From: Mizuhopecten yessoensis
Lineage: Eukaryota
Length of the DNA: 64,000 nucleotides
Assembly (NCBI RefSeq): GCF_002113885.1
Contig: NW_018406654.1
Span: 298,957 to 362,956, forward strand
Direction of reading: 5' to 3'
Under the pieces are notes generated by a model. That model searched no databases and was not told the DNA's origin. It saw nothing but the letters and a program-made list of their open reading frames with translations. Position 1 is the first letter of the stretch; every line of letters starts with the position of its first letter. This document shows positions 22,621 to 63,987 of this stretch, in pieces. The position numbers and the translations under genes are program-made.

Positions 22621-24199
22621 GAAGCCAATAGTTTATCTTTTATTCAATTTGATTTATATCATAAAAAATCCCTAATTTGACAGCAATATTTCGAATACAA
22701 AGTTACCTCCCTTAGATGTCCTTTTCGAGAGACTGCTTTAGGGTACTTACCTTGTTTAAGAAGATGAATTGTGGTTGGAGCAAAAGTTAAACTAGATGAG
22801 GTCAAGGGTTCAATCTCCTGCCTAGCAAAGTGTAATTTGTTACATTAAAACACTGTTTTTGATTATTTGTGTTCTTTTATCCTCCTTTTTGGTTTTAAAT
22901 AGTTCCACAAGTAAGATTTCGTTTAAGAAATGATTGATATAAAACCTATTGTCATGCCAGACACACAGGTTTCCAATGCATAATTACAGGGATTTGGCAA
23001 TGCCATAGGGATTCTTAAGCAAATACATGATGAATATGTACATACTTATATACGTTAATGTCTCTTCTACAAAGCTTACCACATAATTATACATAACAAC
23101 GTGCTAACATAGCAATGATCTAATGTCATCACGCATGCCTACGCTTAACGTTACAACATCATAATGTCACGGAGGTTGCAGTTTGTCGTTCATTATTGCG
23201 CAACGCCTTGCAATTTATTTTAATAGATTACAGTGAGAATCAACCGTGTTCATTTTGAAATAGAGATGAATGTTATTGCACTTGAAATTGATTTAAAACC
23301 TTATCACATATCGCTAGATTTCTCACCTTGATAAAACAATACTAATGAATTCGGCATTCCTTTTGGAGAACAGATAAATGAAAAGGCGGGAAGAATGCCT
23401 CCACAAAATATTAAGCAGTGCACTCTCTAACGGAAATAATTATTAATATTCATAAAAATGAAATTCATCTTTTTAACTTTTACAATGGTATGAAATACAG
23501 TTATGTTCAAACATTTCAATGCTACGCAATATTGTTCATTGGAAATTATGTCTGAATGGAACTATCCTTACTTTATCATTCGCGGGAAAAAACCCCAAAA
23601 ACATTTTGTTTAAAAATCACGTTCTTTATTATTTTATGCGGTTGAAACTGTTTGTTAATACAAACTGTTAATCAATTGATTGAACAGCCACTTTGGCGGG
23701 AACAAGATCGTGGTTATTATGGTTACCAGTTTCCTCCAGTGGCGAACGAAAATCGGAAAACCATTCGGGAATTTCCGTCATACTTTGAATTAGACAACAC
23801 GCCACGATTGGTCCACGAATATTCAAATTATCAAAGGGAAGACCCGAACAGTTCACGATTGATAATTAGTATTGGCATGTAATAGCTCTTGCTGTTATCA
23901 CCTTACGACTATGGATAGCGAAGGTAAATAAAAGGGTTCTCTCTAACAATTTTATTTTATTTTGATATAGCATTTTCCGAGCAGAGTCATAATGGCGTAA
24001 TACTTAAATTAACATTAAAGTAGGCGTACAAAAAGCTATACTATTTGTGTTGCAAGACTTTTTTCACATATAATGAAGTTTTATAGAGATTTTCAACACT
24101 TATTTTTCTCATGTCTACTATTCAAAATCATATATTCCACTTTCTCAGCCTCATCAACTGGCACCATCTTGACATGTAAAGGGTCCCGTATCGGAGATG

Positions 24200-25982: not shown

Positions 25983-26016
25983 ATGCTTTCGTTGGTAGTT
26001 ACAGTGGTCCTTCTCG
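25983..26016 (+). CDS. Exon 1 coding part, signal peptide MLSLVVTVVLL(G)
   Basis: aaaATG at 25983, hydrophobic run, donor g|gtaagt at 26017, phase 1; TATA box about 110 nt upstream. Confidence 0.88.
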
Positions 26017-38700: not shown

Positions 38701-41700
38701 TTGTTTTTGATAAAACTATAAATGAAATATGTATTTTTTGAATTTTGAATTACTGCATATCATATATCAAAATTCAATATGAAGGCAGGTAACTCTTTAT
38801 ATGTCACGGTTATTATGTGTAAGGTGGCATATAACCTTAAACTGACTTGTATTGGGATGATTTTGATGAGAAATGCTCGTATTTTCGACATAGTTTAAAT
38901 GCATTTAATCTAAGGTATTGCCGTTTGTACATTGGATTTGTGTTTGTCTAACACAGACATGTGCAAATTGTACTTTTTTACCTATAATCTAAAACATAAT
39001 TTTAAACTGCTTATTTTTTGCAGACCCGATCATTCCAGGTAAATATGACATATTATTTTTTTCCTCGTTAATGCAAATAAAGAAACTGATCTGAACTGAT
39101 CATGGATTCTGTATAACAGTTGCTGCCTATCGATACTGAATTGATTGGGTTTTTTTCATTTGATATTTAATTATACAATAACATACATGTACACTATTTA
39201 TATTTACGTCATATGTTTTCAGCAAGGGGACATTCGAATACCAAGGTTATAAGTAAGTACACATTTTGATACATTTATGCCACATATACCCTGTGCTATA
39301 TTTTACTAAGGAAATAACATTTACGGGAGATTATAATTTAAAGCTCCATTTCCGAATACAAATAGGAATTAGGTGTATATTTAATATTAATATCACATTT
39401 TCTGCACTGTATTTCAATTATTATAATGATTAATGTGATAGAAAAATAATGCTGACGAGCAAATCAACCACAAATGTCTCCGAATAATGCACTCTGATAA
39501 AGATATAGGGCCGTCATCACATAAATTATCAATATGGTGTATACTTACCAAGTGCCATGGAGTAAACTCAAAACATTTTGTTTACAATATCATCATGGCT
39601 GATAATGGTACATCCAGAGTACATTGTCAAAGATTTACATTTATAGATGTCAAAATAAATCTATTTGAGATGTTGAACCAAAACAGTGATTTTTATTTAG
39701 ACACAATTGCTATTCGTGTTGAACGTATGTCTGAAAAACACAGTATTTTAGTTACGAACCCTTTCTTCACTTCGGTCACACTTCGTATTATATTTGTGTT
39801 ATTTTGACCAACTGATTTAATCAGTCGTTCCATTTGCTCTGCTTTCTCATGAATCAAAACGAATATATACACCTAACAAACGAAAAAAGTAGAAAATTAT
39901 AATATGTTTTGTCTTATTTTTAAGCTGTACCGAAAGTTCATCGTGAACAAGTTGGTATACTCCACCAGGAAGCGGGTAAGTTATGTAAAACATTCCACAT
40001 CGAACGGTTATTTGCGAAGTGTATAATTCACCGTTTTGCTATTTTACAGTCCAGTATAATAAAAATGATGATAATAATAATATACAATATTTACTATTGC
40101 GCCCTATCTAGCTAGAATAAGCCACTCTGAAGCGCTTTAGAGTACATAGATATATAATTTATACAATCAAAACAACTAGCATGTACATTAATCAATGCAA
40201 TTTTGAGGAATTCGCAGGGGCTGCCTTATCAGGCGCTTACTACTGGTCCTATGCCACCTGGCTAATAGCTTATTATGTGATTGCGTGTGTGCTGGAGATG
40301 TAATGTGTAAAACAGTATTTGTCATTTTTAAGTGTTTGTATTGATTTGAAAAGCAATTATTATAACCAGTTAACTATGTGTAATGTATAATTAAAACATT
40401 GCTGTCTATCATGTAATTAAGGCGAAAAATGTGGTTATCTGTTAATGATGTAGATATGTATGTATTTTAACTTTGTGTTCACAAATAAGCAAATCAAAAT
40501 ACTTTTGCAGGGTTTTAAACAAGATAATCTGAAAATATATCAGTTTTATGGCTTATGTATATTATTTAAGAAAAACAGCTATCGTATAAAAAACAAAATT
40601 AATGGGAACGTTGTTCAAACGTGTTCAATGAAAGAACAAAATACAACAAAGAGAAAGTAAAAGCTATTGTTCAACACGTATACTAACTACATTCTTCTTT
40701 TGTAGTCCCTGTCCATCAGACACAGGTCGTGACCAATGAACGTAAGTTTAACGTATTTATTTTATACATCACAACCATTGAACACAGTGTTCATTTTTAT
40801 TGAAGTGATATTGTTCATCCAATTTAGTCTTTATTTTCGTTAACCGGCGTTATACGTTTTTTTCATTATTCAAACAGGTTGGTACTTTATATGTAATTAA
40901 CTGTTAAAGTAGATATTCTTGCGTATTAACTCACTGAACACTGAACATTTCCTGATATGCATTCACACAGATTGTTTTATAATGAGAATGCTATCATATA
41001 CGTTTAAATAGGATGACGTATCAGCTACGTCAGCATGTTTTACATGGGTACATTGTCTCACAAGTTCTGCATTTGAACAACTTTTTAATTGGAAGATAAT
41101 TTGTAATGTGTTGTTTGATTTTTTCAGGGGTGAAAATTGTAACACAAAAACAGCCTGTTCTCGTCCCACAAACCAGTAAGTAGAATTATGGTATTATTTA
41201 TCTATTAATGTAGTTATTGCAAAACATTTCTATCTCTTTGTGGAGTAGTTTTGGAGAAAGGTAACATCGGAGTATCATAATATAACCTTTTTCTTTTTCT
41301 TTTACAGGGGTTCAAAAGATTCTCCAGCAGGTACCTGTGCAAACTGTTAGTAAGTAAACATTTGTCATTTCAATTGTAAGAAAACATATAGATAATGGCG
41401 GAAATGCATCGTTTGATCTAATGTATTGCATCACAGATGGTCGAGTCCTTAATGACGAAGAAATGGTATTATTTGTGTCGCAAGTACTAATAATGAACAT
41501 TTTTTTAAATTTTTAATTACAGAAAAAGTTGCAGCGCCAATGATCTTCAAGCATAAAGGTAAACAATCCCTTGCAACGATATGTTTTATTGAATCATTTA
41601 TATACAAGTATTAATATAATAATCGTTCGATTCTGCTATAAATATTCTGGTTGCATATACCGTCTTTGCGTATTGCAGAGTTATCTTTTCTTGAGAGCAG

Positions 41701-44700
41701 GTATTGATTGTAACGTCACTTGTTTGTGAGAGTAACGTCATCATCAATTCTTGAGAAAACGACGTAATTTTCTCACACAAACCAATGACGTAACAATCAA
41801 TACATGCTCCCTAGGGAAGATAACTCGGCAATACGCAAAGACGGAATATGTACAATAAGATTATGATATCTTCGGTAAATGCTAATTCTTTGTTCATGTG
41901 ATTTGACAATAACGTTTTTCATTATGTTAATTGAGGTGTCTTTTTAATTTGTTGTCACTTTCCCTTTTCCGTATTCGAAAACGTGATATTACTTGTATTT
42001 CATAACGGATGTCTCCTTGCTATTCATTTCATTGATTATATCTTGCCCTAGTCTCATCGAGTTTAAGGTCGAACAACGGTTTTTATTTCATTTCCTTGTG
42101 ATAATTTTAGTCAAAAGGGGGATAAAAATCAATTTAAAATCTTGAAACGTAATTTTCATTTGATAGCATGCCAAATATGTCTACTATTTCAAAACGAATA
42201 ATTTCACGTAAACGGCTTTCTCCCAAAGAAAGGTTTTCGGGGGTTCGCACTAGAGTGTATGATCCATTTTCGATGGGTGCGACATGTCGTGCAGGAAATA
42301 GCTAAATGGTTATCGTGTTGGATCACTTGATGTAGTATCTATACCTTTGTGGATATTCCGGATATCTTACCTTTTCTGTTCATGGGCAAATTTTTAAAGT
42401 TTGTCTTTTTATCGGTTATTCATTGTATTCTTCAGGTTGGCGTTGTTGTACTTGCTGTGTATTGTAGTTTATAGACCCCCAAACCCCCCATGTTTTTTGT
42501 TTTTTGTTTTTTTTTAATATTTACTGACCAAAATGTGTCACTGGCAATATAATGTTACGACACCTAATTTAGATATATATTCCACTCAGATGTCATTATT
42601 CTTTATGGACAATATAGTTGTATAATATGAACATTATGGCATGGCTGTCTCATAACTTCATAACTAAATGTTGTTGATTTTGTAAATATCATTGGTCCCG
42701 TTAAATTTATGAGCCGTTGTGTTTCCGCTACGTCATGTTTTGGTGTGCTGGCTATTAATTTCTTATATTTGTTGCTTCATTTTCTTTAATTACAAATTGC
42801 TTGCATGTTGTCTATTTTTTCATTCAGAAATTGTTCCCTTCATCAAGGAAAGAACAAATCACGGTGAGTAGCTTCATCCAAGTATATACATACATAACAT
42901 TTCCCAATTTCTCAATAATATTTTTTTATCATTGATAATTTTCTCGTCCACAAATGATAATGTTGGCCTCATATCTAGATAACCTAGTTACCTAGAAAGT
43001 CTTCAATGATCTGGTCTCTCTTACGTAAAACCTCATTATATTATTTAAAGATATTGCTATCAATTAGCATTCACAATAACTACCATTTGTGTCATAATTA
43101 AACTATATATATAAGTAATATATTACTTGTATCTGCCAATTACAAACTTATTAATGTATTTTCCTTTGTGTTGTATTGCAGTTGTTCATAAAAGTAAGTA
43201 ATTTAACACAAGAAATGATAAATCTAATGAAAAGGAATTCAAAATAATGCAAACGAAATGTAACCAGCGATACTTGAATATATAATGTTCCAATCAAAAT
43301 AGTATGAAATTAATTTAAATGGTAGGGACCATTACTTTAGTCTACGGTAGACATTAAGAAACAGTACCGATAAAAATAATCGTATTTTGCAAAAAGCATA
43401 AATTACCTTCACGAATATGTTCCATGATACACAGCATATAATTATTCTTTGTTTGATTGAATGTAATGTCGTTAATTGTTAAATGGCATTGATTTGCATG
43501 GCCATGCATGTGTTGTTATTGTGTGACTGATTTTGTTTTCGTATTTATCTGCTCAAGTTGAAATTTGTTGAATTCATGTTTAATTCCTTGAAAAATATGA
43601 ATCCCTGTACCAATGCAGGCAAATACAAGGGTACCCACCTCTGTTTCTTATACATGCTGTTATTGACCTTCATCTTGTTAAGGATATGACTTAAATGCCC
43701 TATAAAAACGGAAAATAATGTGTGAACAGCTCTGAGATGACCTACGAACTATTGTATGATAAAGCGGTATATAAGAACTCGAATTATTATTATAATCATT
43801 ATTTGTTATCTTTTGTTCCCAGTTAAAGTGCCTAAGTACATAACAAACACTGTCGTGCGTAAAGGTAAGTTTTATCTATATAATTCTATATGCATGTACA
43901 TAAACAAAATCATAGCTGATGACGAAATAAGACCTGTGGTGACGTAATGCCGGATCGCAAAGGGTGCGAGATATAGTGTTATAGTTGGCTATAGAGTCTG
44001 TCTTACAAGAGTAAATTCAAGTTTTACCGCGTGTCATTTGCAATTTAGAAATTAATAATCAAGAAATGATAAGCGTGAAAACCAACTGTCTCGAGTTTGG
44101 GTTGTTTTTCCTCAAATTACGTTTATGTTGTATTTAGAAAAAAGATGATTATCTTAATTATGATGTCGCAAAATATGACGTTGAAAGTAGTGTTACTTAA
44201 CTTCATGATTAACAGATTGACCAATGAAATAACCATGTGCCAGTGGGGTCGGGTTCGACTTTCAGTTGTCATTATAATAGGTATAGGGGTGTCTTGGTCG
44301 TTTATCATTTCTCGTTGATACTAATTCCTAAATAATGGTTATAAATTTAAACTGAACGTTATTTTAAAGAATCTGATTCACAGACTGTAAAATATCAAGA
44401 GGTTTTTAAATTGATATGTTCATTGTCAAGTTGTATATGTTAGGATATTTTACCATTGTTATTTAAATTATTTGTTTCATCAAATTCCTTTGTTTTTATT
44501 TATTTTGCATTTTCATATATTTCAGTTCCCGAACCTGTTGCAATTCCAAAAATCCGTACGTATACATTGAGCTATTCAAATTGCTTATTGAACATATTTG
44601 TGAAAAATCGTTACATTTTAAGTCTTGCAGAATAGTGTCTTAACATTTTAACGTGGGTTTTCCAGGCCCTAAAATGTCTGATAGATATTTGTTGTTATGT

Positions 44701-47700
44701 CAATCTGCCATTACGCTATTTATTAAATGTGTACACAAAGTTAAAAATATTTAAAGTCATAAATGGGTTTTTTTGGAAAAGATCAAGAAGCTTTGTATGG
44801 AGAAATGTTATAACAGTGTTGTAAATGCTATGTTTTATATATTTCCGAAGCCAATATTATTATGGAACATCTTGGTTATGATTTTTCTTTTTATTCCAGA
44901 AACCAAGCACGGTGAGTAAAAAGGAACGATAATTTAAGAGGGGAAAAGTTTAAAATACGTCTTCGTTATACTTTGAAGGAAATTGGTTACAGTCCGAATT
45001 TTGACATTGTTTTTTTACCTTTAAGCAACATATATCATATTCATTTCTGGGTTCCTTATTTTGGCAGTTTAATATCTGACGATTTCTCAATACAGCATTT
45101 TGAAAATAATATCTTTGACAAATATTTCCATATTCAAAATAGTAAAACCTATTTTTGATCCGATATTCATTGTTAGTTTTTCATTTCGAGGTAATTGTAA
45201 GAAAATTTGACATGAAAAAATACACCTTTTGAAAACAACTGTAATGCGAAATTGACTTTAGTCTGGTACATATTTTAATTTGATTGAAGACGGTTCAAAC
45301 AAGAAAGCAGTTTTAGATAGGGGCTGTCTTACTATAATTTGAAATGTTTCGCCCAGAAATGAATCATGGTTAAATCTATTTCGTCTGTGATTTTAGTATC
45401 ACAATCGTAACTGAGTTAGTTGTACATTTAATCCTAACGTTCATAAAAAGGCCCATAAGGATATATTTCAATAACTGACTAAGTCAATGAGCACTGAACG
45501 AATACGTGTCTGTTTCAAACCCTGAAGTACGATATGAATAGAACAGCCAATTTGGTCCAGCGTGATGACGTTTAAGACTATTTTTCACTATCTCCTTTCT
45601 CAAGTTCATATCAATGCAATCTAGACAGTACTTCTAGAGTTACATATGTATTCAAGCTTTTGAAAACAGAGATAAGAAAAGCATCTGTTTATATATATAT
45701 GGATGTATATCAAATATTATTTTGGAAATCATATTAAATATATTATATTTCATTGTGTCATAAACAGCATGTGCATCTACTCATTTCAGTCCATCATGTT
45801 CGGACAAAGGTTGTGCATAAACACGTTCCATCTCCATGTAAGTATGAAGTACTTGCATATTAATTGTGTTATTAATTTTAAAAATGTGTATGATAATTTA
45901 TGTTGTTTATACTCAAGGGGACAAACAAATTGAGTCAATGTTCGAAAATAACGTTCAGGGTTAAGCAGATAAGTTTATAACTAGGATCATAACAGGTCAT
46001 CACGAGCTGGATATTATCTTATATGACATAACAGTGAGACATTGCAATGAAATTGTCAAAAATGTAAATCATACAAGTAATCTACCAAAACGTAAGTGGT
46101 GGTGAATTTGTATTCTTTGTAACAATATAGAAATAACCACCATACACAGAAAAATTAACAAGACAAGTGGTTCGTGTTCACATTCTAAGACCATTCATAG
46201 ATGAGTAAATCGGCATGACATTCACATCGTGAACATGAAAATACGGGTATCGTCGATATCACATCACGATAGAACATTTCGCTACAGTTTAACGTTAGTC
46301 ATGTTTGCCCTCTTCAATGAGGAAGAATTTATCATAATAGAGAATATAAGTACACAATATGTAATATTTCGTTATTACACTTGAGGCGCCAAATCAACAC
46401 TTGGCGAACATGAATGCTATCGGCAAATTGCGAAATTTACTGGGCGAAAGTTTTCTTGCATATAGTATTAATTCATAATGAATGTGTTTTGAGATCAGTT
46501 TAAAACGATATATAAATGAATAAATATTAATGGCTATTATATTGGTCCATCTGCGTATTGTTGTTTTGATATTTTACAAAAAAACGAATGTTGATTTCAT
46601 TCTCATTTCTGTTTTGTTCACAGATCGTGTCGACAGTGAGTATATTATTACGCTGAAGACTTTTTTCAATAAATAATATTCGGGACGTCATTAACATTCT
46701 AGTGATACGTAAATTAACACATGATTTGTATGATTCGTCCAAGCTCAAATTTACGCAATTAAAAGTATTAATTAATAATTTCAGGAAAAAAACTTATTTA
46801 TAAAGAATAAATTGAATCAATGTCAGTTCATGTATTTAATTAAAAATGGAACTTTGATGAACTTATTAATATTATCAAATCTATCACGTGATGCAAAAAA
46901 AGGTGTCATTTTTTTTTGTATAACCATACATAGGTTATTACATTGCTATACTCGATCAAATGTACATATCAAATCATATTTCTACTTTTAATAATACATA
47001 ATGTTCATGTTGCGTTTGTTACAGATTATGTCAAAGGTAAGTACTACTACACGAATCATTCTCGCAGAACGGCATCAACCATGTCTAAAAATTAACTAAG
47101 TCAATTGTTTTAAGAACAATCATCTTTTGATGTGATAAATTTGAACGATTTTGTAAATGTGCTGATTTTAATGCACCCTCAATATATGCTGTTGGTGATA
47201 ATCACAATGGTAATGCTCTATACTAAAAGCGCGGTAAGCGCTGAAATAAACCTACGGTTAACATTTGTTCAATTTCAGGATAAAAAAGGTTAATTTAAAA
47301 AGTCAAAGTCAATAATTTTATACTTTATCAATTTTCCTTTCAAATCACGAAATCAGGATTTTCTTTAAATATATTTGTATGCAAATATCTTTCGTGTGAC
47401 CTATGCCTGCTAATAATTAATTTTGTTTTTGTTTATTCTTCTACAGTACCAAAGCACAGTAAGTAGAGTTATCTATCTTTTATGTATATGATATATGAAA
47501 AAAAGAGAGTGAAGAGAAAAGACCTATGGAAGCTCTGAAGACCAGAACTACATTACATTAAGCGGAACATTTAAGATTTGCTAACCTGAATCTGTTCTTA
47601 AAGGACCAGCGCATTCTTAATCACGTACCTGCACATGTAAATGTAATCATTTCATAGGGAAAAATCGATTGAAAGAAGTATTTTTTTCCCTGAATTAACC

Positions 47701-50700
47701 TTATGTACTCCGTAGTGAAATTCTGTGAAACAATGCCGGGTAATACATTGTTGTACACTGTGACGTTTCTTTGTGCAAGTAAGACTATATAAGACTGCAT
47801 AATACTATTTACTTGTTAAACATAAATAGTTTACAGCTACAATTTGAGTGAAACATTTTAACTGTGAACCATTTAAGATCAATTTTGTAATCATGAATTG
47901 GATATTTCGAACGAAACGCTTTGATTCGATGAAGCGTCTCCTTTTATTAAGTTTATAAGCTTCTTACGTATCAGCACATCCGGAAGGTTCCGGTAAATGG
48001 AACACGTTATAAAGTTGTCATTTTAATTAAATAATGTTATTTATTTTTCTGTTTGACGTCAAAATATATAATACTACAAGAAGTAACATTGCATTGTATC
48101 TTAAACTTTACATTTCGTAGAATCAAATTACATTTTTGATATAGTTTCCCAGTATATGTCAATTTCATATTTAATTAATGTCGTTTTATATTGAAAAATA
48201 ATAGTATAACTTTGCTTGGTATGATTATATACAAATGTCATATTATAACTTATATTCGTTTCTGTTTCTCCCTTTGTAGTTATTAGAAATTGTAAGTATA
48301 CTTTTGATCATCCACGAGACATACTATTTTAAAGCGTGTGCAGTTATTTCATTACTAGCATTACCATACGAAAACAAACTTTAAACAAACAAGTAATATA
48401 ACAATAGTGAGTTGTAGATTTATACAATGCACGGATGTGATGTAGAAAGCATTATCATTATCGCACACGTTATCCTAATGCATAAATGTTTTAGAGAGAG
48501 AACTTTAGTTTCAATACATAAAACTTAATTAATTACTCTCAAATATGTTAACAACTAAGAAAAACACACACTTTGTAATCATTGCAATTCTTCAAAAATA
48601 TCACAATGATTGTTTATTTAAATGATGATGTCCCCATATTCTTATATCTCTTCTTTATTTTATGAACAGCTCCTTCCCCGGGTAAGTCAACAAAACTGAT
48701 CATTTTCATATTACTCCATAATTTAACTTTACATGACGGAAATTTGTACATCGATATTTGAAATCAAACAATTATTTTCTATTAATATGCCGAACACCTT
48801 AGGGCAATGTTATATCCCAATTCCATCGCATAGTGAACATTACTTCAACATCATTGTCGCATTTCATGCAATATATAAGCCTTTGTATATAATAGTAATA
48901 TTGAACTACAATATACTGTAATTGTTTACACTAATATACATATATACGCGATGTATTAACTGATATTACGATATGAAGATTTTATATCACAATTTGTCAG
49001 CATTAATTTGAATTTTTCATACCTGGTTATCAGTATAAAATGACTGATGACAGGTCTACAAACAACAATGCATATTATATGTTCATATTGAAATATTTTA
49101 TTGATTTCTTTATTTTTCCTCCAACAGTTCCAGTGAAGGGTGAGTGTGTTCTTTCAAATATACGTGATGCATGCTATATTAAACAACTACGTAATACATA
49201 ATCTAATAATAATGTTATTAATAATTTATTGTTAAGATAATACAAATGACGACACTTGTTGAGTATCTTTAAAACTTGTACATGAGAAAGATACGATTTT
49301 TCTACTACAATAAGATAATATAATTTATTAAAATATGATTTTTGTATGAACTAACATCTCATAGACACGTCGTTCAAGTCGCATCAACTTGAAATGCAGT
49401 CAATTTGTATGTAGTTGATGGTTCCTAGTCCTTGAAGTTAGCGTGTTAACAATTGTCAATGCATCTGTTATATCATTGAAGTATAATGGTGAGGTTGGGG
49501 AGAATTTCCCATTGATTTTAAAACAACTATAATAAAAAAAATCGTTATCTTATCTTTACAGTTGCCGATCCTAAGTACATCGACCGTGTGCGTAAGTAAT
49601 TATGTTTTATAAGTTGATTCCTGTAAACACAATCATATTTTTTCACTTATCTTGTGAATAGAAATATCTTTGTTTAAAACAATATATAGAGAGAGAATAA
49701 TTCATGTCTTTTTCCATATCACACCCAGTATCAACCCGATACTGCAATATCAGCCCGAGGGCCCGAGGGCCCGAGGGCTGATATTGCATGGTCGAGGGAT
49801 GATACTGGGTGTGATATGGAAAAAGGCATGGTTTATTCTGTTTATTACATACTTTTCACCTTCTTAAAGTCCTTATTTCTGAGAAAAAAACATCATTAAA
49901 TTAGTCTTTACATGAATCAGAAAGAGAAGTATTTTTGTTGTGTAATTTTAGACAATTGACTTTTTTTTAAAACACAAATAAATATATTGTCTTATTACAT
50001 ACTTACTAATAAAAGTTACTACCTTATGATCTATTTTTCTTTTGAACTATTGAAAAACGATTTTTTTTCCAAGAAAGGGTGTGATACGGGTTTTTGCGGG
50101 CTGATACGAGTTTTGGGGTGTGATACGGCGGGGGCTGATACGGGTTTTGGGGTGTGATACTGCGAGGGCTGATATGGGTTAGAGCAATTGTGTCGTATCG
50201 CATATACAAAAAAAAACGTATTTATTATTAAGTATGTAATAAATATCTATAAATGGTGTAGATATTTCTAAGCGTGTCCATATCTTTGCTAGTTAACGTT
50301 TTTAAGCTGGTGTCTTAAACACAAAATAAGCGAAACTGTATTTCACTTCAAGACATTACATTAATCCAATCAACTAAAATTACTGAAATATTTGAAGATT
50401 AACATGTGTAGATTGCTTAAGGAAACGGGTTGTACGAAGTAAGGCCATACATGAATCTATTTTGTTCAAGCTTAAATAATACAGAACTTTAATATTTTAC
50501 TTGGAGGTCCGCTCTCGTAATATATACGTTTAAACTTCGTATCATTTCAAATAGTAAATACATCCTATTTTCACCTGTTTTTTGTTTATTATTTTGCAGA
50601 TGTAAAGACACAGATTGTTCCAAAACACAGTAGGTTTATAAGAATGTTACCTATTTACTTATTTTTTTTCATATATTGATAAGATACAGCAAGCTTGTGT

Positions 50701-51428
50701 CATTTGTTTTGAGATGGTCACACATCTAACTACAGATTCACTAAAATAAAATAAAAAAAGTTGTGAGAAACGTTTTATAAATCTCATGTAAAAAGGATTC
50801 CGAGGTTATGTCGTTTATCTTATTTTTGTTTGTACATGTAATTACTTTGCAAGTTAGCGCTTCGATAATTCAATAATTCTAAGTTTTTTTAACGTTCAAA
50901 ATATACATTACTGATATTTTAACAGTGTACACATTTTTCTAATATCATTTTTTTTCTTTCTTTCAGTCGTCCACACTGGTAAAAGCAGTTATTCCTTTTA
51001 ATCTTACACATCTATAATAAAAATAAAAATAAAATAAAGATATTATTCGATGCAACTCTACTTCCATTTTGACTTGGTGCGCATGCTTGTTTAATTCTAA
51101 ACGTGGAAAATGATAAATCCAAACATCTATTTTTGTCGAAATATCTGAATAAGGACTTATGTTTGTTGTCTATATAGCTGTAAAAGCAATAAAATATGAT
51201 TTTGTTTTAGTGTTTTATCTAACTACATATTATTTTTAATTTTGTTTTATTTCAGTCGCTAAGCCAATTACCAGTAAGTATTGTTTACGTCGTTTTAATT
51301 TCTTACACATTTGAGATGTATAATATATATATATAAGCCCTAGAAGGCAGAAAGGCCTAGCGGACGATCTGAAAAATTTGTTTTTATTCTATATTTTCCT
51401 TCGCAAGGACTTATTTATTTATCTATTA

Positions 51429-51472
<44 letters not shown>

Positions 51473-54400
51473 GATTCTTATTAACAAATTTCTATTTCAA
51501 GTTGACCAATTCAAGCTATGTTAAAATGGTTTATTTATTACTGAGAGCCATATTTAAACTATTTACGATAGACGTATAATAAATCATTGGTGTGTGCAAT
51601 ATATATAACATACTTAATCTAATTACGTTTTTGGTTTATTTTTTATTTTACAGAGATCAAAACAGGTAAGAATATATTTTAAAATTTATCATTGTCCCAA
51701 ACAGTCTTTTGTTCGCTCAATCCTGCAACATATTTGAAAAGTAATTGTTAAAGTAACTCGGATTGTAATGTTTTATAGTATAAATAGTGTCGTCACTGTT
51801 CAAATAAAAGCACGTTTATATACTTCTATTCTGGAATATCTATAATACTATAATACATTTTTTTCCTTATATTATTATGTTTTCACTTTAAAAACTGTTC
51901 TGTTTGACTTTTTTTCAGAATATAAAACCATTCACAGTAAGTATTTTTGAATCAGTCTTCAATATGGTAAACTTTAAAATCAAATAGAGGTAAATAAGCG
52001 ACTATTTACTCATACGGTCTGTCATCGTTAAATGAACTATTCGATTCGATATGTGTGTTCTGTATGCACTATACCACCCGAAAGTTTTATCTTCAACGTT
52101 ATTTCCTGATAACTAAGTACAATATGCACGTTAGAAAAACGACATTATAAAAACTGAGGAATTTGATATATGTCTATGATTGTTTATGTTTTCCATTTCT
52201 TAATTAGAGTACATGTATGTACATTATTTTTAACGAGGATTGATTTTGTGATTTTCTTTCTTCAAGAAACCGTCCCTATCCCATCACCCATGCCTAAACA
52301 CTGTGAGTATATAATCACATATCTATTATTATGCTAGATCAGTTTTACATATTTCGCCAGGTGTATCAATGACGCCATTAAGTGACAAAGAAAATCTGTA
52401 CCTTTAAATGTGTATGTTAAATTGCTAACATTCATGTAGTCCTAATTTCACAAACACGTGTTTGATTTCATTGGCGATACAATCAGGTTGTAACGTACGC
52501 AACGTGATTACCTATGTTTTATATGAATACTTAATTATAACTGTATCACTATTAATCATAATACAAAGCTTTTTGAACAAAACTAATACGATCACGCAAA
52601 AGTAACTTAACCAATGGTATTGAGCAGAAATTAACTAGAACGTTTACTGTTGATAAATATAGACTTTATCTATTTTACAACAATTATAAAACAAGTAAGT
52701 TCAACTTGAATATTAATCACTGTTAAGTTTATAAACATGTGTGTTAGAGGCGATTTACAAAATCCTTCTTTTATCATTGAATATGTTTAATCATTTCAGT
52801 TCACCACGTGAAACACGGTAAGTATGGAGAAGAGGATGGTAATGTGAACGATTAATTCATCAGAATATCATTATACTATAATGTAGTTTTTGACCACATT
52901 AATTCAAATAATCAGTAACAATGCTAGTATTTAGTTGATGTTAATAGATTATCTAAATTATACAGCTCGCACAAGCAGATGAATGAAAAGCAAAAACAAT
53001 TGGTTATATGCTATTTTTGTACTTTTTATACAGAAAAATAGTATCATTTGAACAATTATATTGCTTTTTTTTATATGAAGAAGATTATCGTAATATTTAC
53101 ATTGATATGGAATATAGAGATAGAGAGTAGTGCGGCTAAGGAATTTGGGAATTCAATCTACTGCAAAAGAGTGAAAAAATAACGACCACAAAAGCAACAT
53201 GCTATATAGGCATACATATTGAGACATTTATCCCGTTTTCACATACTTAATTTACCCCAAAATACAGTTTTGTCATTTTAAATGTACGTTTCCGGTGTTT
53301 TTTTTAAATATCACTGTTATCATTTTCAAAACTAGTGGTGTTTTATTAGAAATTATCGTCTCTTAGACAAAGAAAACTATAGAAATGCCGCAACACACCT
53401 CAAGCAATGACATTGTAATACAATAGTGATAATGATATAAATACATTGATTTTTAGAAAATGCATCCAGTCATTTAATTTACGAAAATTCAGTCGCAGCG
53501 CCGACGTGAACCTTTTCATGCATTGTTCAATGCATGCTTGCCAATATACCGTTGATGCTTTGCTGTCAAAACGAATTCAGTTCATAACTTTTACTTTACA
53601 GTTTCTAGTCTCTATGATTATTTTGATATGGGATGCAATTTCATATCAAATATATAATCAAAGTGTACTGTATAACCCGAATTGTTCCTTTGGCACTTTC
53701 CTTTGTTATTTGAAGCTATGCAAATGTTTCGTGGTGCAAACTTTCCTGGATATCCTATATTAACAAACAGTAGCCACGCGTATCATTCAGATTTGTTGTA
53801 TTTATTTTCGTGGTTCAATAGCAACCACGAAAACCACGAATGTTTATACACAACGAACCTTACTGACATCTATTGGAGATGATACACGGTTTTATCAACC
53901 CTAGAAAGTTAAAGGTTATGAACCAATCTTTTAATATATATATATATCGCATATGTAATCTGTTTAGAAGTATTTGGATTTGTTTTCAAATTTTAATATT
54001 TGTGCCTTTTTCCCTTAACAGTCGACAGACCTATTCATCATACAAGAACAGGTAAGACAATTCGTTTTAACAAAAGAGACAAATTATATCTTTGCATTCA
54101 ATACAGGTCTTCGTTTCAATACATTTCTCATAAACACTATGAAACGTAACAAGCATCCTGTGAACAAATGTAGTTTACTTTAAATCGTTAAAGCAGGCAT
54201 GATTTGTTTTAAATTGCGTCGAATAACATACACCTTTATCATAATACTATAAATAGGTGTTTAATCGTAATATGTATTTGATTTACTGACAGTGATGCTA
54301 ACTGACTCAAATTTCCCTCATTTCAGTGATCAAGAAAGTGGATGGTAAGTATTTTAGAAACTTTCATGGTGCACACATTACTACTGAAAGCGTTTGCTTT

Positions 54401-57400
54401 TAATTAAATGATATCCAATAAAAAAAACAATTCGAAATATTTCTATTAATAACTATATTTTATCTATATATAGATATCGGTTCTTCTGGAAACAAACCTT
54501 GAAATTAAATAGCACTTATTTCGAACCTTTAAAAATATAACTAGTTTCATTGTTGATTTGAGAATTTATACTTAATATCTGATTTTTAATTCATGGAATA
54601 ATTAAAAAGAAAGTTAAAAACAAATTGACTTTACTCCAAACCTTCAATAAACGTATGCAGTAAAACAAGTTAATATGTTTTGTATTGACATGTTATTTGT
54701 TGAAAAACATTTAAATAAGTATATACTTTTATTCTATATGAAATAATGATGTACTTCATATATATCACAAATCATAATCATACTTTAGAGATTTGTCTTT
54801 TCACAGGTACACAGCCGAATACAATTATGTTTAAGGCTTTTAGTTTAAACGATGATTTGACAATAGAAAAAAAAAATCAAGACGTTAAGACGAAATATTA
54901 TGCGATCTATGTTTAACCTAATATATATATATGATGCAAATATTTATTAATGTTATCCTTGCTTCATTTCAGTACCCAAGATCGGTAAGTAAAACCTTGT
55001 TTAGTGATGTAAAAATCTATTTGAGACTATATACATAACAAAATTGAATTGCTTAAATTATATAGCAGGAAAACCGGTGCATGAAAAAACATGATACTAA
55101 CCGAAAAATGGCATAAGGCGACGTGATATGAAGTGAAATGTATGCATCAACCTAAGCATACATTCCGTTTGTATGACAATTGTGTCGACGAATTTAATTA
55201 TAAAATGATTTGTTTATGTATGTCAATATAAAATATTGAAATTTAAAATAGATAACGTTATAACAAGAATAGTTTCCTTAAATTGTTTCTTTTAATCTAA
55301 CTAATAACTATTTGCTGTAACTGTATTAACGCTGTGTGATATGTTGTCTGTACAAAGAAAATATCAAGTCATTTACACCATGATTACATGTTGAATTATA
55401 ATACTTCCTTTTAACATAAAATCTCATTTCTGTTTTGCAGTTGAGAAGACACGTAAGTTTTGCCAGTGTAAAATCAAAGATGCAATAAACTTCATTAAAT
55501 GTCACATTTATATGAAAAGGTGCAATTGTTAAAGCATGGAATATTTTTGGACGATTACATTTCATAGAGATAAATATCTCAATATTTTTTTCTTGTCAAA
55601 GCTTGTTTATTTTATTCATTATGCTTTAGATATTTATTTACATATTCAAACGACAAAAAAAAATGTATTCTGATACTGCTAAATGCAATATGTATTTATC
55701 ATAAGTTTGATCAATGTTTCTTTTTCTTAACAGGCTACCATGCAGTTGGAGGTGAGAAATGCATAAAAGTTAAATTATCTTACTGTATCATATACAAAGA
55801 GTATATCATCCATTAATTCAATTATACCAGAGGGTTGATTAGGTCTATACATTTAATGCATTTTAATATTAATGAACCGATTCAGAAATTAACGAGATAT
55901 GTCAGCGTATCGCATTATGTGTTATATCTGGGTAAGGAGAGGTCTACGGGCTCATAGACCCCGTCTGGTCTTTATCGACCCCGGGCCAAAGACGATGGGT
56001 CTATACATACCAAAGGGGTCTTTAAACCTGAAGACCACGCCAAACCCAGAAATAACGAATCTGTCACCCTGATAATCTATGATCACTTTTTTCTGCTAAG
56101 GCACTTTATGAGTTTAAGTTGTACTCGATTGCTACCAGAATAGCCCATCTTTGAAATTAACACCCTACGGCCCCCTAATCTCCTGTTTTGTTGAAATTTC
56201 TGTCGTTTTATATTGCTTGTAGGCTATTACATCATGCGAATGATTGGCAAACTTCGAACGCTTGAGTGTTTCACGGACGCTATCTTTGTTGTTATGCAGA
56301 AATGTTTTAGTTTGAGTTATCTCCACTGGCACATGCTATTATAGACCCCGACAGAACAGGGTCTATAGCAATATAGATCCCGGCAAAATATCCAATCAGA
56401 AAGGGTGTTACAAATGAGAAGGGTGACAAAGTATATTGTGTCCATTGCATTTGTCAAAGATAACTAGTGAAAAGGAAGCTTGATCCTGTTAACCTGGCTA
56501 ACTGATGGGGCTTAGGGGCTCACCAAAAATGGTTTACATGATTACCAGAAGAATGAAAGGGCCAACTTATTTGGTCTTAAGTAATAAGTCAACCAATAAT
56601 ATAAGTTAATTGAGTGCATAGGTGTTCAACATAAAAAAATAACCAATATATATTGGAAATGTGTGTACAATTGCCTGTAAAACATAATTGCATATTTACA
56701 ATAAGGAATACAGCTTTGAACACACACTTCGTTACGTTTAGTTTATTAAAGAAATTAATATAAGCGCAGTGTAGAGTTACCGGTTGCGTCTGTGTGTGTT
56801 TGTGTGTTTGTGTGTTTGTTTATTTGTTTACGGATCCTATTGATCAGGCCGTTGTAGAGTGACGGTTCACTTAAGTAGGTCACAGTGTCCTTTACTACAT
56901 CTACTACGATTTTGCAGCAAAATAAATACAGCGTTTCTGAAAACCCTATGAACCAAGTAATTATAAAAGAGTGTAAATGGGGATAGTACGCAGTTTTTTC
57001 ATGTCTTTAATGGCGATTGGAACATAAAAAATTAAACTCTCGACATATCGGTCTCGAGTTCAAACCAGATATCATGTTATAATCGTCAACACTAGTCATT
57101 TAAACGACGTAATGTGTTTATCATAAACTGCTTAACATTGTTTTTATTATCTTTCAGTACCTGTAGTCAAGACTAATACCGTGGTAAAAACTAGTAAGTA
57201 AAATATTACTTGTGTCATAATATTTTGTTTTTTAATAATAATATTTTTTGTGTCATAATATTTTTTTATCAATGTTTAATCTTCATTTAAATTAATTTGT
57301 TCTTTCCGTTTCATCAAATTAATTTTGTTATCGACTAAATTTACACACTGTCACCGTAGAAACGGATATATAATAACACTTTCATAGCGTTAATACTGTA

Positions 57401-60400
57401 TGCCTGTTTATTATGTGAACATATTATAAGACAGTGACATTTTTTTTATTCTTAACTTAATAGATGTCGTGGATCGGCCGAGTAAGTAAACTTGATTTTA
57501 TCCAATGTACTTATTAACGCTCAGTTTCAATACTTAACGACATTCTGGTTGAAAATTCGATATATTGATAATCGAGAGCTGTGCATGACATCAGTTTGTG
57601 GCAACAACGTTGGTATAACTTTCGTCATTAAGAAATATAACTAAAAAAAAACAACTAATCGAAAATATGTTGTCGGTAATGTTAAAAATGTGCCTTTGTT
57701 TATGTATAAATCCTGTTATATTGCGGGGTCCGTCGCTTATTATAATTTATAATATGCAGATATGTTTTGAATGATAGTTGTTATTGGAGTAGGTAGATAT
57801 ATATTCTCCAAAGGATCATTATTATTTTTTAGGAAGTTGATAATTCAAAATAATCATATGCAAACAAAAGTCTGTTTTTATAAAAATATAATGATAGTTT
57901 AGGGGAAATAGGAGATACGAGTTCGAGCTTTGACAATTGGCTAAATTAAGACCTGTCAGTATACCTGTATGTATTTGTTTTAATATCATGCTGTTTTTCT
58001 AATCCACAGTCCCAAAAATCTGTAAGTACTAAATCAACATCAGCCTTTTTAATACAAATACCATAATATGTGATATCCTTAATATTATATATTTATATAT
58101 ATATATGGGTCTATGAGAACGTTCATGTTGTATTGGGTGCTCTTAAGATTTCTGTCGTCGATATTGACTTAAAATTAGTTTTTATACATGTAAACCGGGT
58201 AATTTTTTGTTAATTTTTTTTTAATGTTTTTAATATCTTTCTTTATACTATACATACTATGCGTTTGCCATAATTAAGTTCATACATTGTATCTTAATAC
58301 AAGTTTTATTATTTTGCTTCTTCATTTTCTACATGATTCGTACAAAAGTACTGTTATTCTTGTTAAGTAAATTCTTACTTCCTTTTGTTCAATTTCCATA
58401 TATAGCACATTTTAAAACATGTTCAAATTATATATTTCTATTATAATTGCATGTTTTATATGAATTAATATTGGTTTTTGAATGAAACACTAATTAGTTT
58501 AAAGGTAAAGTGTATCAAATTAAATCGGGAGAAGAACTCCACGCAGAAATTTGAGTGGGAGTTTTCTTCAGTCTATATAGTATTAGTAAAGGATGTGCAT
58601 CTGGCTAAGAGTAACTTCCCATATCAAGTTCCTCTTAAACTGTGTGACCTTTGAATGAGATCTTCATTTTGACGCCTTTCCTTAATAATTCATGGATCGT
58701 AAAATGTTTGAAGTGAAACATTTGCAATGTATGAGTCTTGAGTTGGACGCCTTCAGTGTTTGTGTGTTTTTAAATAAGTTACAATCATTAATTGTTTTAT
58801 CAATCATCACTCTGTAAAATGGTTCCCAGCATGTGATTTGTATGGAATACTTTCTGTGTAAAAGAGCTGTAACATATATTTTACAATAGTGGCAAAGGTA
58901 TCCTTAACACTCACTTTGCCTGCATTTAATTTTCAACCATCGCATAAGCTTACATGATTAGCTGTTTAAATATGCATTTTTGTTACGTTTTAGTTAAGAA
59001 TGATCACCATACTCAAGCGTATATTGAGATAACCAACGACTGTAACACTATGACATTATAACTTTCACATACGTTTATTATAATGTAAATATGATATAAC
59101 TTAGACACATTGAGTAGACAGCGTTATAATGATAAGGTAAAATGGGCATGGCATACCAATTGAATAGCATAACTACAATGAGAATGTATCTTTCGTAGAA
59201 TATACTATCATATTGAACTTTGATGAAACCTAACAAAAACTGTATTGTTTTTGCACAAATATTTTAACTGGTTTCATTTATTCATTTCAGTCAATCGAAT
59301 TCACACTGGTAAGTAATTATGTCGATATTTTTATTATTGTACATCTTTTAATTTTGTCTTTTTATCTAAAAGTGATACCTTCCTGTTGAGTAAATATCGA
59401 GATACATTGGTTATATCTATATCACAGGAATAAAATTGACTTACATGCAGTATAACTTGCACACAAAATATATATTTTTTTATTTAAATATATGATTGTA
59501 AATGATTTATAATCCTCCTTAATGAAACATGACATACAATATAAAAAAGGAAGAGACACGTGAGCATTATGTCAATTTAGGCTGTTTGTATTTATGCAAT
59601 TACTTTACTTGTTTATGGAAATCTGTCCCGTGTTTACAGACATTACAATTTAAATCTTAGAAATTCTTTCAAAATAATTCACTATTTATCAGGTTGAAGT
59701 TTTAAGGTTCTATACCCTCTGTATGTTATCATTGGTAATATTTGTTCTTGATCTGTAAATGCATTTGAGTTATTTCTCATTCAGATATCTGTTTTTAATT
59801 GTTGAAATTGATTTATATGTAACTGTCATTCATATTAATAATTAAGTATAATCAATGTTCTCGTTTTCTTTGAAATCTCCATGAGGTTTTTAATTCCGTT
59901 GCGTGTGTTAAAACTTTTTACTCACGACTTATGGTAGGTCCACGTAGTGATTACAAAATAAAACTATTATCCGTTTGAGTGGGTACTCGTAATCCACGAA
60001 AGTATATACCCGCGAATATACCTTTTAGGGAAACCACGAAAGTTGGTTCTCACAAAAATATCTGACGTCACCGAATGTACAATGCTGTTTGTTTATTAGC
60101 GAAATAAGAGAACCCGAATATATTATAAATACGCGATGTAGTATTCTCGTGAGATGTGCAATGATTGCACGTGTTCCAATTGAACCTATTAATTGGGATT
60201 GGTAAGAAACTTTAAAGTGAGCAGTCTCTTAACAATGATATAAAAATACAGTTGCTTAAAACTGGGATAAACCTCACGACCCAACTCACGTGGATTTGTA
60301 AATTGACTTTGATTCTTTTATTCAATTGTAAGCCTCTTACTGTTATGCATTTGTTAACTTTTATATCTAATTGTATTTTTTTTTTAAATTTCAGTTAGAG

Positions 60401-63400
60401 AAAAAATTCCAGGTAAGCATACTTTTTTTTCGCTTTTAGTCGTATTAAATGAATCATTTCATACTTATCCATTCGCCCTATATTAATGGATATATCTTTA
60501 ACATTCCATTCGTTTTCATTAGTCCATATACTCACTTTTAATGTGACATGATGATGTAAATGTTCAAAAAGGACTGAATTATTTGGATAAGATCAAGGTC
60601 AAGGTAACTGTTATTCAATATAGTTCAAGATGTTACGATTCTTGTCTCCTAATTCAAGAGATACTTACGTTTTTGAAGTATGAAATTGAGTTAAACGGTG
60701 GCAAAAGAGTTGTTTTTCTAAGGTCAAAGTCAAGGTTACTGTTACTAAAATTGGGCCATTTGGGTACAGTCAGACTTAATATGGAGTCGCAGAGACCTGA
60801 TAGTAACATTTTCATTCCCTAAATACATTATCAGACTTAGCTCTCATGAGAATCTGGAAAAAAAAGATAAAAGTAAAAGAAAGCATGACATAATTTGCAT
60901 AGTTTATACATACTATATAGTGCATTGTATATCCAATTGATATTGAACAAACGGTGACATTTAAGTCAAATAGAATACCAAATTTACCAAATACCCAAGT
61001 GATAAAAAAAAATATCACTTCGTCGTCTTGAAATTCAAAATTGGCAGATAGAAAAAGCAGAAACGTTCTAAAAAGCAACGGTAAATACATCGTACTTTCT
61101 ATTAAATAAACCATTTTTTTTTTTCATTAATTGTGTTTATTTATGTATGTATTTATGTATTTATTTATTTTTCAGTTCCATACAAGCAAACCGTGGTTCA
61201 ACAACGACCATGTAAGTTGATAAGCTCTATTGATGTGTGTGTATGCAAAATTGCTTTAAAACAAACCGGACATGGAAAAATATCAAGTTACAACCTACTT
61301 GTATCGAAATAACAATTTCTATTATATAGGCAACATATTTCTGAGATAATATATCAGTAAGAAGTATATTTTTATTTTATTTTGGAAAGTGAATGAAAAC
61401 GCTTAATTTGGTTGAAATGGTTAATTGATAAGGTTATACACTAATTTAATATCAATAATGTCATGATTCAGTTTACCTCATCTTAACAGTGTTATAATTC
61501 GATATTATTTATTATTTTACAGTTCCAGGTAAAGATGCACTCCTTCCTTGCACAGAATCACGTCAATATTTTGCCTCATGGTATATGTATCATATCAATG
61601 TGGAAAGTAATAAGGATCACTAATAAATAGTACACGAACAAAATAATGTTATTCAGATTATATAATAGTTTTCATATATGCAGCATGTTATTGAATTTTA
61701 TAGCAGCATTTTCCAAGTCCTTACCTTAGCTGCCGTGTTGTTTCTGTTATAATTAAAGATGAGTTTTACTTGCTGGTGGTATTTTATAAGTATAACACAA
61801 AATCAATCACATTTTCATTTAAAATACTATTTCAGAAATTATCCCATAGATATTTGTATATGTTAATGTTGAATTTTCTAAATGTAGTTTCATATGTAAT
61901 CCTTTGAAACGTTTTCCCCATATAATATCTTTGTATGTCGATGCATTGTATACTATTGTTTTTAATTATTTTTCTGATTTGTGTATTTATTTATGTTTCA
62001 GTTGTGCAAACAAGTAAGTATTTTCTAAATAACACAGGGCATAGTTACTATTGAAAGATCATGTGATACAAAGAGTACACAACGACAAATAGTTCTGCAT
62101 ATTTGAATAGGGAAAATGAAAAATATTGCTAAAGTACAATAGTGTAATATGCAATATTTTATATTCATTGGAAGATATCATTAACACCAAGTTACTGTTA
62201 AATACATAGATGCTACACAACGAGTACCGGGTTGATATCGTATTTATCTCACTCGAGTTAGATAATTTTCGAAAGTCACAAAAGATACGAGCTTTACTAT
62301 TATCATTTATTAATGTCATTATTGTATTACTACTTAAGCGGTGCATTCACTTTATGATCTTATTAAATGAAAAAACAATAAGAGCCACTGAACTTCATTT
62401 GAGTGTATGTGTATGGCATGGTATACCAGCCCCACATTTATACCAACACCGTCCAGCCATTACTTCATTGAACATAAACTCATTTACATAATATTAAGTA
62501 TAGTAGTTAAACCTCAGTACAGTGTCACTTGTTCTCTCGTGTATTGCCATCATATTACAGGTGCTCTTTTTCTTGAGGATCCATTCCTTTGTTTTCTTCT
62601 TAATGATTGTCAAACCCTTTTATAATGCCAAATTAAATATGGTGACGGTATAACGAGGTTTTCGTGGATCAGTTTTCTGTTTTATATTTATAACCGTTTG
62701 TATTTCTTATTTTTTTACAGAGGTGGTAGAAAGTAAGTATAGATCAATGCCGACAGTACTATATTAAAAATAGCGTTGCATGAAATATAACAAACAAATT
62801 AAGTAACTTATCAAGTAGATGTTATGTTTTTATCGGATAATTTTGCAACGAAAATTGTAAACACGAAAATCAGATGAATCGTTTGTTCCTCACCTAACAT
62901 ATCAAATATTCATTTAAGATACTCATTAGACATTGATGAGAAACATTGGTTACCTAACAGGCCTATATTTGCCTTTTTGAAATGATTAAATACACTATAT
63001 TATATAACACAATCATTTATCTGTGTAAAATATTTTGGTTTTATGATAATCATTAGATATTAATGAGAAACATTGGTTACCTAACAGGCCTATATTTGTC
63101 TTTTTGAAATGAATAAATACACTATATTATATTACACAATCATTTATCTGTGTAAATCTAAAAAGCATGTTTGAAATATGCAAAAAATTATGTATCCAAA
63201 TCAGGATTTACAAATCATAAGTCTAAGCATGTACGTGAGGAATTGGAAATCCTTTATATGAAAATATTTGTTTTGCACAAGTTGTACAATGGTATCTCAT
63301 AATCATATTTTCACATTTCTACTTTTCAGAACATATTAACCATGTACAGAAGGGTGAGTGTTAAGCCCATTAAAGTTTATTTATTATTTGTAACAAAGAT

Positions 63401-63987: not shown

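Follow-up and report, generated by a model that had tools for sequence, protein, structure and literature searches.

Collagen is the textbook example of exon lengths that track a structural period, and it has influenced thinking about the evolution of repetitive structural genes. Elastin is Gly-rich and is encoded by phase 1-1 cassette exons of 27-186 nt, which follow no mod-6 rule, alternate between hydrophobic types rich in Gly, Val and Pro and cross-linking types with Lys-Ala or Lys-Pro, and undergo extensive alternative splicing. The PEVK region of titin, part of a giant Ig/Fn3 gene for an intracellular protein, has exons of about 75-84 nt that encode repeats of 28 residues. The exons of fibrillar collagens, 54 bp long or otherwise divisible by 9 bp, share the same Gly-X-Y start and have been traced to a primordial exon that was amplified (PMC2852846). 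The micro-exon genes (MEGs) of schistosomes combine a signal-peptide exon with many symmetric micro-exons, which account for the greater part of the secreted protein's coding sequence (PMC4015677). In this study, we analyzed a 64,000-nt stretch of the genome of the scallop Mizuhopecten yessoensis (NW_018406654.1:298957-362956, forward strand; the whole stretch is called the window hereafter, and positions are counted from its first letter), which carries a chain of phase-1 micro-exons. Each of them has a length divisible by 6 nt, and the protein product of the chain shows a rhythm of two residues. An earlier note on this DNA had drawn attention to the chain.

In this unusual micro-exon gene, a known principle, the coupling of exon length to a structural repeat, takes a new form. 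As in collagen, each exon spans whole repeat units and opens at the same point of the unit, and the register is held over dozens of exons; this congruence of exon and repeat extends to the entire model (42/42 multiples of 6). Unlike collagen, the unit is two residues (6 nt) rather than Gly-X-Y (9 nt), and the Gly-X-Y motif itself is missing, with 0 Gly in 320 residues; phase-1 introns split codons, whereas collagen introns lie between intact Gly and Y codons; and the exons are 12-48 nt long rather than 45-162 nt. The scallop gene resembles the schistosome MEGs in that its coding sequence consists mostly of symmetric micro-exons (42 that begin and end in phase 1, of which 16 are 12 nt long). 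The MEGs are known for skipping and need lengths only in multiples of 3, whereas the scallop gene is spliced constitutively in the RNA-seq run that expresses it (X14) and uses multiples of 6; moreover, its product, from a mollusc and not a flatworm, is periodic and, with more than 320 residues, much longer. Elastin likewise has a split codon at each junction and is a Val-, Pro- and Lys-rich extracellular structural protein, but the scallop sequence contains no Gly and 6 Ala, and its exon types do not alternate. Titin PEVK shares the many small symmetric exons and a Pro/Val/Lys-rich extended segment, but Pro, Glu, Val and Lys together make up 48% of the scallop residues against at least 70% for PEVK, and the scallop gene has a predicted signal peptide and no larger coding exons in the window. 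A further likeness is to the Glu-Pro/Lys-Pro rods of TonB, for which references in PMC7098700 describe Pro at every second position (as in the scallop run VPIPSPMP) and an expected extended conformation. The TonB repeats are short, pure and intronless, whereas the period-2 rule of the scallop protein also governs Thr, Gln, Arg and Val.

Materials and Methods

The assembly comprises 987.6 Mb in 82,659 contigs. The window is AT-rich (GC about 30%) and contains a single N at 33943; the 30 kb downstream were also read and were named L004 and so on, L004:3250 being equivalent to window position 67250. The first exon search paired AG and GT sites, asking for a tract of pyrimidines and for a donor resembling GTAAGT. 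As a check with RNA, four RNA-seq runs from four studies were mapped to 40700-46699, with a threshold of 10% for the listing of joints. Exons after 47458 are based on splice signals and an open frame. For an unbiased scan, splice-site matrices were trained on the RNA-verified exons only and applied to 47100-68000.

Results

Exon Chain and Exon Lengths

The AG...GT scan revealed very short open segments that follow one another regularly on the + strand. In the resulting model, the phase-1 micro-exons measure 12-48 nt, and their chain runs from 40706 to about 67250 (window-equivalent), beyond the end of the window, and includes 42 exons, 960 nt and 320 codons, with 38 of the exons inside the window. 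Every exon (42/42) is a multiple of 6 nt and begins and ends in phase 1, and the lengths fall into seven classes: 12 nt (16 exons), 18 nt (8), 24 nt (2), 30 nt (6), 36 nt (6), 42 nt (2), and 48 nt (2). When joined, the exons form a single open frame with 0 stops, whereas the two remaining frames contain 15 and 22. If even and odd codon counts were equally likely, only even counts would be obtained with a chance of 2^-12 in the RNA-verified exons and of 2^-42 in the whole model. The members and candidate members of the chain inside the window, with their evidence (scores in bits are out of sample), are as follows.

40706..40741, +, exon of 36 nt, VPVHQTQVVTNE; RNA junctions on both sides
41128..41175, +, exon of 48 nt; RNA junctions with 720 reads upstream and 526 downstream
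41308..41349, +, exon of 42 nt, G/A polymorphism (Arg/Lys) at its first base; RNA junctions
41523..41558, +, exon of 36 nt with a weak GTAAAC donor; RNA junctions 41349>41523 and 41558>42828
42828..42863, +, exon of 36 nt; RNA junctions
43182..43193, +, micro-exon of 12 nt, VVHK; inside the 42863>43823 joint in 404/409 reads
43823..43864, +, exon of 42 nt; RNA junctions
44526..44555, +, exon of 30 nt, VPEPVAIPKI; RNA junctions
44900..44911, +, micro-exon of 12 nt, QTKH; inside the 44555>45790 joint in 455/456 reads
45790..45837, +, exon of 48 nt, VHHVRTKVVHKHVPSP; RNA junction upstream, 568-read overhang downstream
46624..46635, +, micro-exon of 12 nt, YRVD; consensus of read overhang, agreement 1.0
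47025..47036, +, micro-exon of 12 nt, NYVK; consensus of read overhang
47447..47458, +, micro-exon of 12 nt, VPKH; first 6 nt in read overhang, strong splice signals
48280..48291, +, micro-exon of 12 nt, IIRN; splice signals, 19.9 bits
48670..48681, +, micro-exon of 12 nt, SPSP, weaker acceptor; splice signals
49128..49139, +, micro-exon of 12 nt, VPVK, second AG 6 nt inward; splice signals
49562..49591, +, exon of 30 nt; 22.7 bits
50600..50629, +, exon of 30 nt; 19.2 bits
51256..51273, +, exon of 18 nt; 21.8 bits
51654..51665, +, micro-exon of 12 nt; 19.2 bits
51919..51936, +, exon of 18 nt; 21.0 bits
52267..52302, +, exon of 36 nt, KTVPIPSPMPKH; 16.7 bits
52800..52817, +, probable exon of 18 nt, FHHVKH; 14.5 bits
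54022..54051, +, exon of 30 nt; splice signals
54327..54344, +, exon of 18 nt; 15.8 bits
54973..54984, +, micro-exon of 12 nt, VPKI; 19.6 bits
55441..55452, +, micro-exon of 12 nt; 18.9 bits
55734-55751, +, weak or optional exon of 18 nt; multiple of 6
57158..57193, +, exon of 36 nt; 22.7 bits
57464..57481, +, exon of 18 nt, NVVDRP; splice signals
58010..58021, +, micro-exon of 12 nt, IPKI; 16.3 bits
58581..58610, +, probable exon of 30 nt (24 nt from the acceptor at 58587) with a GTAACT donor; weakest member of the chain
59291..59308, +, exon of 18 nt; 22.2 bits
60395..60412, +, exon of 18 nt, VREKIP; 18.9 bits
61176..61211, +, exon of 36 nt; 19.4 bits
62002..62013, +, micro-exon of 12 nt; 19.9 bits
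62721..62732, +, micro-exon of 12 nt; 23.8 bits
63330..63353, +, exon of 24 nt; 16.1 bits
63958..63987, +, probable exon of 30 nt, VPVVRNHVQT (or 12 nt with the GT at 63970 as donor); splice signals

The splice signals are close to consensus: donors read GT[AG]AGT at 35/43 sites, acceptors read CAG at 37/43, and the tracts upstream are 78% pyrimidine. Introns measure 132-1705 nt (median 600), leaving a coding fraction of 3.7% over 27 kb. The trained scan returned, at a threshold of at least 16 bits, 24 open candidates that were multiples of 6 and 0 that were odd multiples of 3, and noise candidates of both length classes at low thresholds. Beyond the window, four exons obey the same rule, namely L004:334-345 (12 nt), 1607-1630 (24 nt), 2578-2589 (12 nt), and 3233-3250 (18 nt), and a weaker candidate of 30 nt (L004:1251-1280) is a multiple of 6 as well. 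Indeed, all of the uncertain members (52800-52817, 55734-55751, 58581/58587-58610, 60395-60412, 63958-63987, and L004:1251-1280) are multiples of 6, so that keeping or dropping them leaves the parity unchanged. Four exons have a second AG 6 nt inside (43823/43829, 49128/49134, 58581/58587, and 63958/63964); use of the inner acceptor would likewise preserve the two-residue register, and at 43823/43829 only the upstream acceptor was used in the RNA.

A 3' terminal exon was sought and none was identified. No long open reading frame (ORF) was found on the + strand of the window, and its six-frame ORF lists contained neither larger coding exons nor flanking Ig exons; no Rfam family matched within the window. 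When 114 kb was scanned for splice sites on the two strands, almost nothing was returned outside the gene, and no neighboring chain of the same type was detected.

RNA Evidence and Expression

The gene is real, tissue-restricted and highly expressed. Expression was seen in one of the four RNA runs; the other three were silent on the exons and were covered only at repeat elements. Run X14 showed strong expression, about a fifth of it giving 385-720 reads at each junction, and confirmed 12 exons, two 12-nt exons among them, with no missed exon between. The signal-based borders were correct at both ends for all 12 RNA-tested exons, and junctions fell exactly where they had been predicted (40741>41128, 41175>41308, 41349>41523, 41558>42828, and 43864>44526). 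The 568-read overhang after 45837 corresponded to 46624-46635 plus 47025-47036 plus the start of 47447-47458, and the overhang before 40706 to the end of the 51-nt exon 9. The 12-nt exons were present in about 99% of the X14 reads, and no exon-skipping joint at or above the listing threshold was recorded over exons 9-21. A 6-nt candidate exon at 45191-45196 was ruled out, being unused in the X14 RNA.

Two sequence differences were found in the X14 reads: G/A at 41308 (Arg/Lys at a split codon) in 393/526 junction reads, and a synonymous T/C at 45827 in about half of the reads. No exonic indels at a level of at least 10% were seen.

Two-Residue Rhythm of the Protein

The predicted protein is rich in Val, Lys, Pro, Thr, Ile, His and Gln and very basic (62 Lys+Arg versus 16 Asp+Glu, with 26 His), and lacks Cys and Trp in addition to Gly; Val, Ile and Thr make up 38% of the residues. 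Counted from the split codon of each exon, all prolines (34/34) occupy even positions, 12/12 in the RNA-verified part, and they fill 34 of the 160 even sites. The rhythm is not confined to Pro: Thr is found 25 times at even and once at odd positions, Gln 17 times at odd and 3 times at even, Arg 14 times at odd and twice at even, and Val 44 times at odd and 22 times at even, while Phe, Ser and Met occur at odd sites only. Thus, odd sites hold mainly Val, Lys, Gln, Arg and Ile, and even sites Pro, Thr, His, Val, Lys and Ile. The strongest Fourier component lies at period 2.0 for Pro, Thr, Val/Ile and Lys/Arg/Gln. A Pro-blind leave-one-out model placed 37/42 exons in the common register (p = 2e-7), including 14/17 of the Pro-free exons (p = 0.006). 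From the end of exon 9, the period-2 pattern continues without a break through at least 320 residues.

Each intron breaks a codon of an odd position at phase 1, after its first base; most often this is a valine codon cut as G|TN, and 16/42 exons begin with a split Val codon. Since introns lie in odd-site codons and each exon carries whole dipeptide units, every exon length is a multiple of 6. The Pro codons are mixed (CCA 16, CCT 12, CCC 4, and CCG 2). The mean hydropathy of the two faces is about equal (-0.23 and -0.49); therefore, the chain is not a classical amphipathic strand.

The two central observations of the earlier note, that exon lengths are all multiples of 6 and that all Pro share one parity, were borne out, the former by RNA borders, by the 24-versus-0 scan and by exons outside the window, the latter in the full model and in the RNA-verified part. 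Odd-codon exons that would flip the Pro parity were looked for in the X14 RNA, and none lay between the 12 verified exons. The counts were revised: 40 exons, 900 nt and 33 Pro in the window became 38 exons, 894 nt and 32 Pro under the same rule, the gap being two putative 6-nt exons; the single testable 6-nt candidate was not used in the RNA.

Upstream Part of the Gene

The candidate upstream exons are of another kind, with odd codon counts (15, 21, 21, 15, and 51 nt), Gly present and Pro at both parities. They were defined by splice signals except for the 3' end of exon 9, which is covered by reads, and exons 2-8 were recovered in part by the signal scans. Of the odd-codon exons reported upstream in the earlier note, the 51-nt exon has reads at its 3' end, and those of 15 and 21 nt are candidates from splice signals.

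25983..26016, +, putative exon 1, ATG and hydrophobic signal-peptide start MLSLVVTVVLL, ends in phase 1; sequence and GTAAGT donor
28341..28355, +, putative exon 2 of 15 nt, GLAAS (signal peptide continued); splice signals
about 36888-36908, +, putative sister 21-nt exon; splice signals
37726..37746, +, putative 21-nt exon in the repeated 0.8-kb cassette; splice signals
39024, +, putative 15-nt exon; splice signals
39925..39975, +, exon 9 of 51 nt and 17 codons, the last odd-codon exon; 3' end by 543 reads to 40706, 5' border by splice signal

The 21-nt exons are carried by a 0.8-kb cassette repeated in tandem (36552-38534), with about 65% identity between copies; two copies have the order CAG, 21 nt, GTGAGT, and in a third copy near 38520 the CAG acceptor is replaced by CAT. 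The protein is probably secreted, as predicted from the signal-peptide-like MLSLVVTVVLL and GLAAS of putative exons 1-2, which would be linked to exon 9 through splice signals. Our guess is that the product is a structural or adhesive component of the extracellular matrix, made in one tissue.

Descent of the Exons and Search for Relatives

Exons of the same length shared a mean identity of 33%, compared with 27% expected by chance, and one exon pair reached the 67% identity cut-off. When 25-70 kb was compared with itself, intron similarity in the mod-6 region was limited to one 60-nt stretch (near 61130 and 61955), and the remaining self-similarity came from transposon copies or from the upstream 0.8-kb cassette. 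Exons and introns being barely alike, any duplications must be old, and recent duplication does not explain the pattern. In addition, the seven length classes imply that many length changes occurred, all of them by multiples of 6. The earlier note had worried that shared descent weakens the argument from probability; low exon identity, unrelated introns and diverse lengths largely answer this concern.

A degenerate pattern of a VPK-type 12-nt exon with splice sites matched only its own exon and one place on contig C1673. The latter, tried as a possible paralogue, proved a chance match with no micro-exon chain. A 9.6-kb DNA query across the gene returned only intronic transposon copies, and no close paralogue, among the 40 candidates scored, and a search of the literature found nothing on scallop micro-exons or on exons in "multiples of six."

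The introns themselves contain repeats. A transposon-like element at 49683-50255 has dozens of genomic copies with 77-94% identity. A palindromic element of ∼190-240 bp, resembling a miniature inverted-repeat transposable element (MITE), is present in three introns (41655-41894, 36207-36401, and 63516-63753) and in many genomic copies; variant reads cover it by the hundreds in each of the four RNA runs, even in the three non-expressing ones.

Discussion

The best reading of these data, partly supported, is a two-residue "structural frame" that would be analogous to the 9-nt rule of collagen. With moderate confidence, we consider that the exon-length rule probably persists by purifying selection on an uninterrupted two-residue register. 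A primordial phase-1 cassette of 12 or 18 nt may have been amplified, after which lengths changed and sequences diverged. Odd-codon length changes would have been purged, as they would throw everything downstream out of register. The chain itself may be extended, beta or polyproline-II-like, with alternate residues facing opposite sides and prolines along one edge. The tiny exons would be recognized through their near-consensus splice sites, that is, GTAAGT donors, long pyrimidine tracts and CAG acceptors. The proposal of the earlier note, a second structural frame (mod 6) under which exon gain, loss or skipping would leave any subset in register, survives in part: the length rule and residue parity are real and linked, but the X14 exons are constitutive, and the expected skipping isoforms did not appear among the joints listed.

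The rule could alternatively be a frozen accident of inheritance with no selection on long-range register, which seems to us rather doubtful but is a serious rival. Founders of 12 or 18 nt with a common phase and common border residues would have grown by whole units, through fusion of neighboring exons by intron loss, 6-nt slippage or an acceptor shift to an AG 6 nt away. Such a history accords with introns all of one phase and parity, with the recurrent split Val at exon starts, with the tandem acceptors 6 nt apart at four exons and with the cassette duplication ongoing upstream, and the collagen rule has classically been ascribed to duplication (PMC2852846). Nevertheless, exons and introns have diverged almost to randomness, yet zero 3-nt changes are found in 42 exons. 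It is well established that in-frame 3-nt indels are normally at least as frequent as 6-nt indels. Moreover, lengths of 18, 30 and 42 nt cannot arise from fusing 12-nt units alone, and the mixed Pro codons show no 6-nt microsatellite to bias slippage. After such divergence, 3-nt changes should have appeared if they were tolerated, and we therefore regard selection as more likely than inheritance. A different question is what structure the register might serve. Under one model, the chain would form a two-stranded antiparallel beta ribbon, within or between chains, with prolines at non-hydrogen-bonded positions and one edge blocked, and skipping isoforms would keep the register. The period of exactly 2, Pro at one parity (both sequence prerequisites of such a ribbon), the high share of Val, Ile and Thr and the abundance of Lys and Arg are compatible with it, and prolines and charges on long edge strands are known as negative design against strand stacking (bioRxiv 10.1101/850982), with which the model agrees. 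We still judge the ribbon unlikely: it lacks asymmetry between a hydrophobic and a polar face, runs such as VPIPSPMP fit polyproline-II rods such as the X-Pro repeats of TonB equally well (references in PMC7098700), a hairpin with a 2-residue turn would by our own reasoning give opposite non-bonded parities on its strands, and no skipping joint reached 10% in X14.

The constitutive splicing also makes it very unlikely that the gene is a variation generator of the schistosome type, in which symmetric micro-exons serve combinatorial skipping and the mod-6 rule is incidental. The layout, with a predicted signal-peptide exon ahead of many symmetric micro-exons in a row, does recall the MEGs (PMC4015677), but symmetry demands only multiples of 3, not of 6. 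As for an artefact of exon picking, in which AG...GT pairs were chosen in the earlier note to fit the idea, it draws on the fact that the exons had been picked without tools, on the putative 6-nt exons and on the one 6-nt candidate that the RNA did not use, and it deserves practically no credence; RNA junctions matching predicted borders exactly, the out-of-sample scan with 24 candidates to 0, the out-of-window exons and the single open frame refute it. Several points weigh against selection on the register as well. Splice signals alone support 30/42 exons, and the choice between selection and an inherited architecture is inferred from a single genome. The secreted nature of the protein is a prediction from putative 5' exons. 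The equal hydropathy of the two faces gives no obvious structural reason for a long-range register, and a local alternation rule, together with inherited residue types at exon borders, would also yield even lengths.

A bolder form of the selection hypothesis is tentative and in our view improbable. The gene would then hold a second, 6-nt structural reading frame for a new fibrous extracellular protein, a beta-type chain of more than 300 residues with prolines on one edge and a single partner, whose register would have to hold from end to end, and register selection would police exon length as the triple helix does for collagen. If true, this would be the first non-collagen case of a structural period written into exon lengths across dozens of independent micro-exons. 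More generally, a period-2 counterpart of the collagen rule, built from constitutively spliced 12-nt exons in a mollusc, would make it possible to ask in another, independent system whether such lengths are set by structural selection or by a frozen history of duplication. It would also suggest a class of extracellular proteins not yet described, basic, free of glycine and proline-phased, possibly a biomaterial component. In addition, the locus would supply studies of micro-exon recognition with natural exons that are very short yet spliced efficiently, and gene predictors likely miss genes with so small a coding fraction.

Other Features of the Locus

A 39-bp tandem repeat occupies 21753-22621 in 22 copies, and an ORF on the minus strand (21637-22608) is open across it for 323 codons, with the unit SSGYTSQHPVTSP. 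Pieces of 1-4 units occur at no fewer than 24 other genomic places, which makes a minisatellite derived from a dispersed element a likelier identity than a coding exon. The window opens with another tandem repeat (positions 1-1041), whose 20-bp unit is present in about 51 copies and where the GC skew is strongly negative. Farther downstream, micro-exon candidates with strong signals lie at L006 about 851-3566 (window-equivalent 84851-87566) and encode Gly/Ala-rich peptides such as GAAGGSIGAM and MRSNAGHQGGFAQGAG; they may belong to a different, neighboring gene for a glycine-rich secreted protein.

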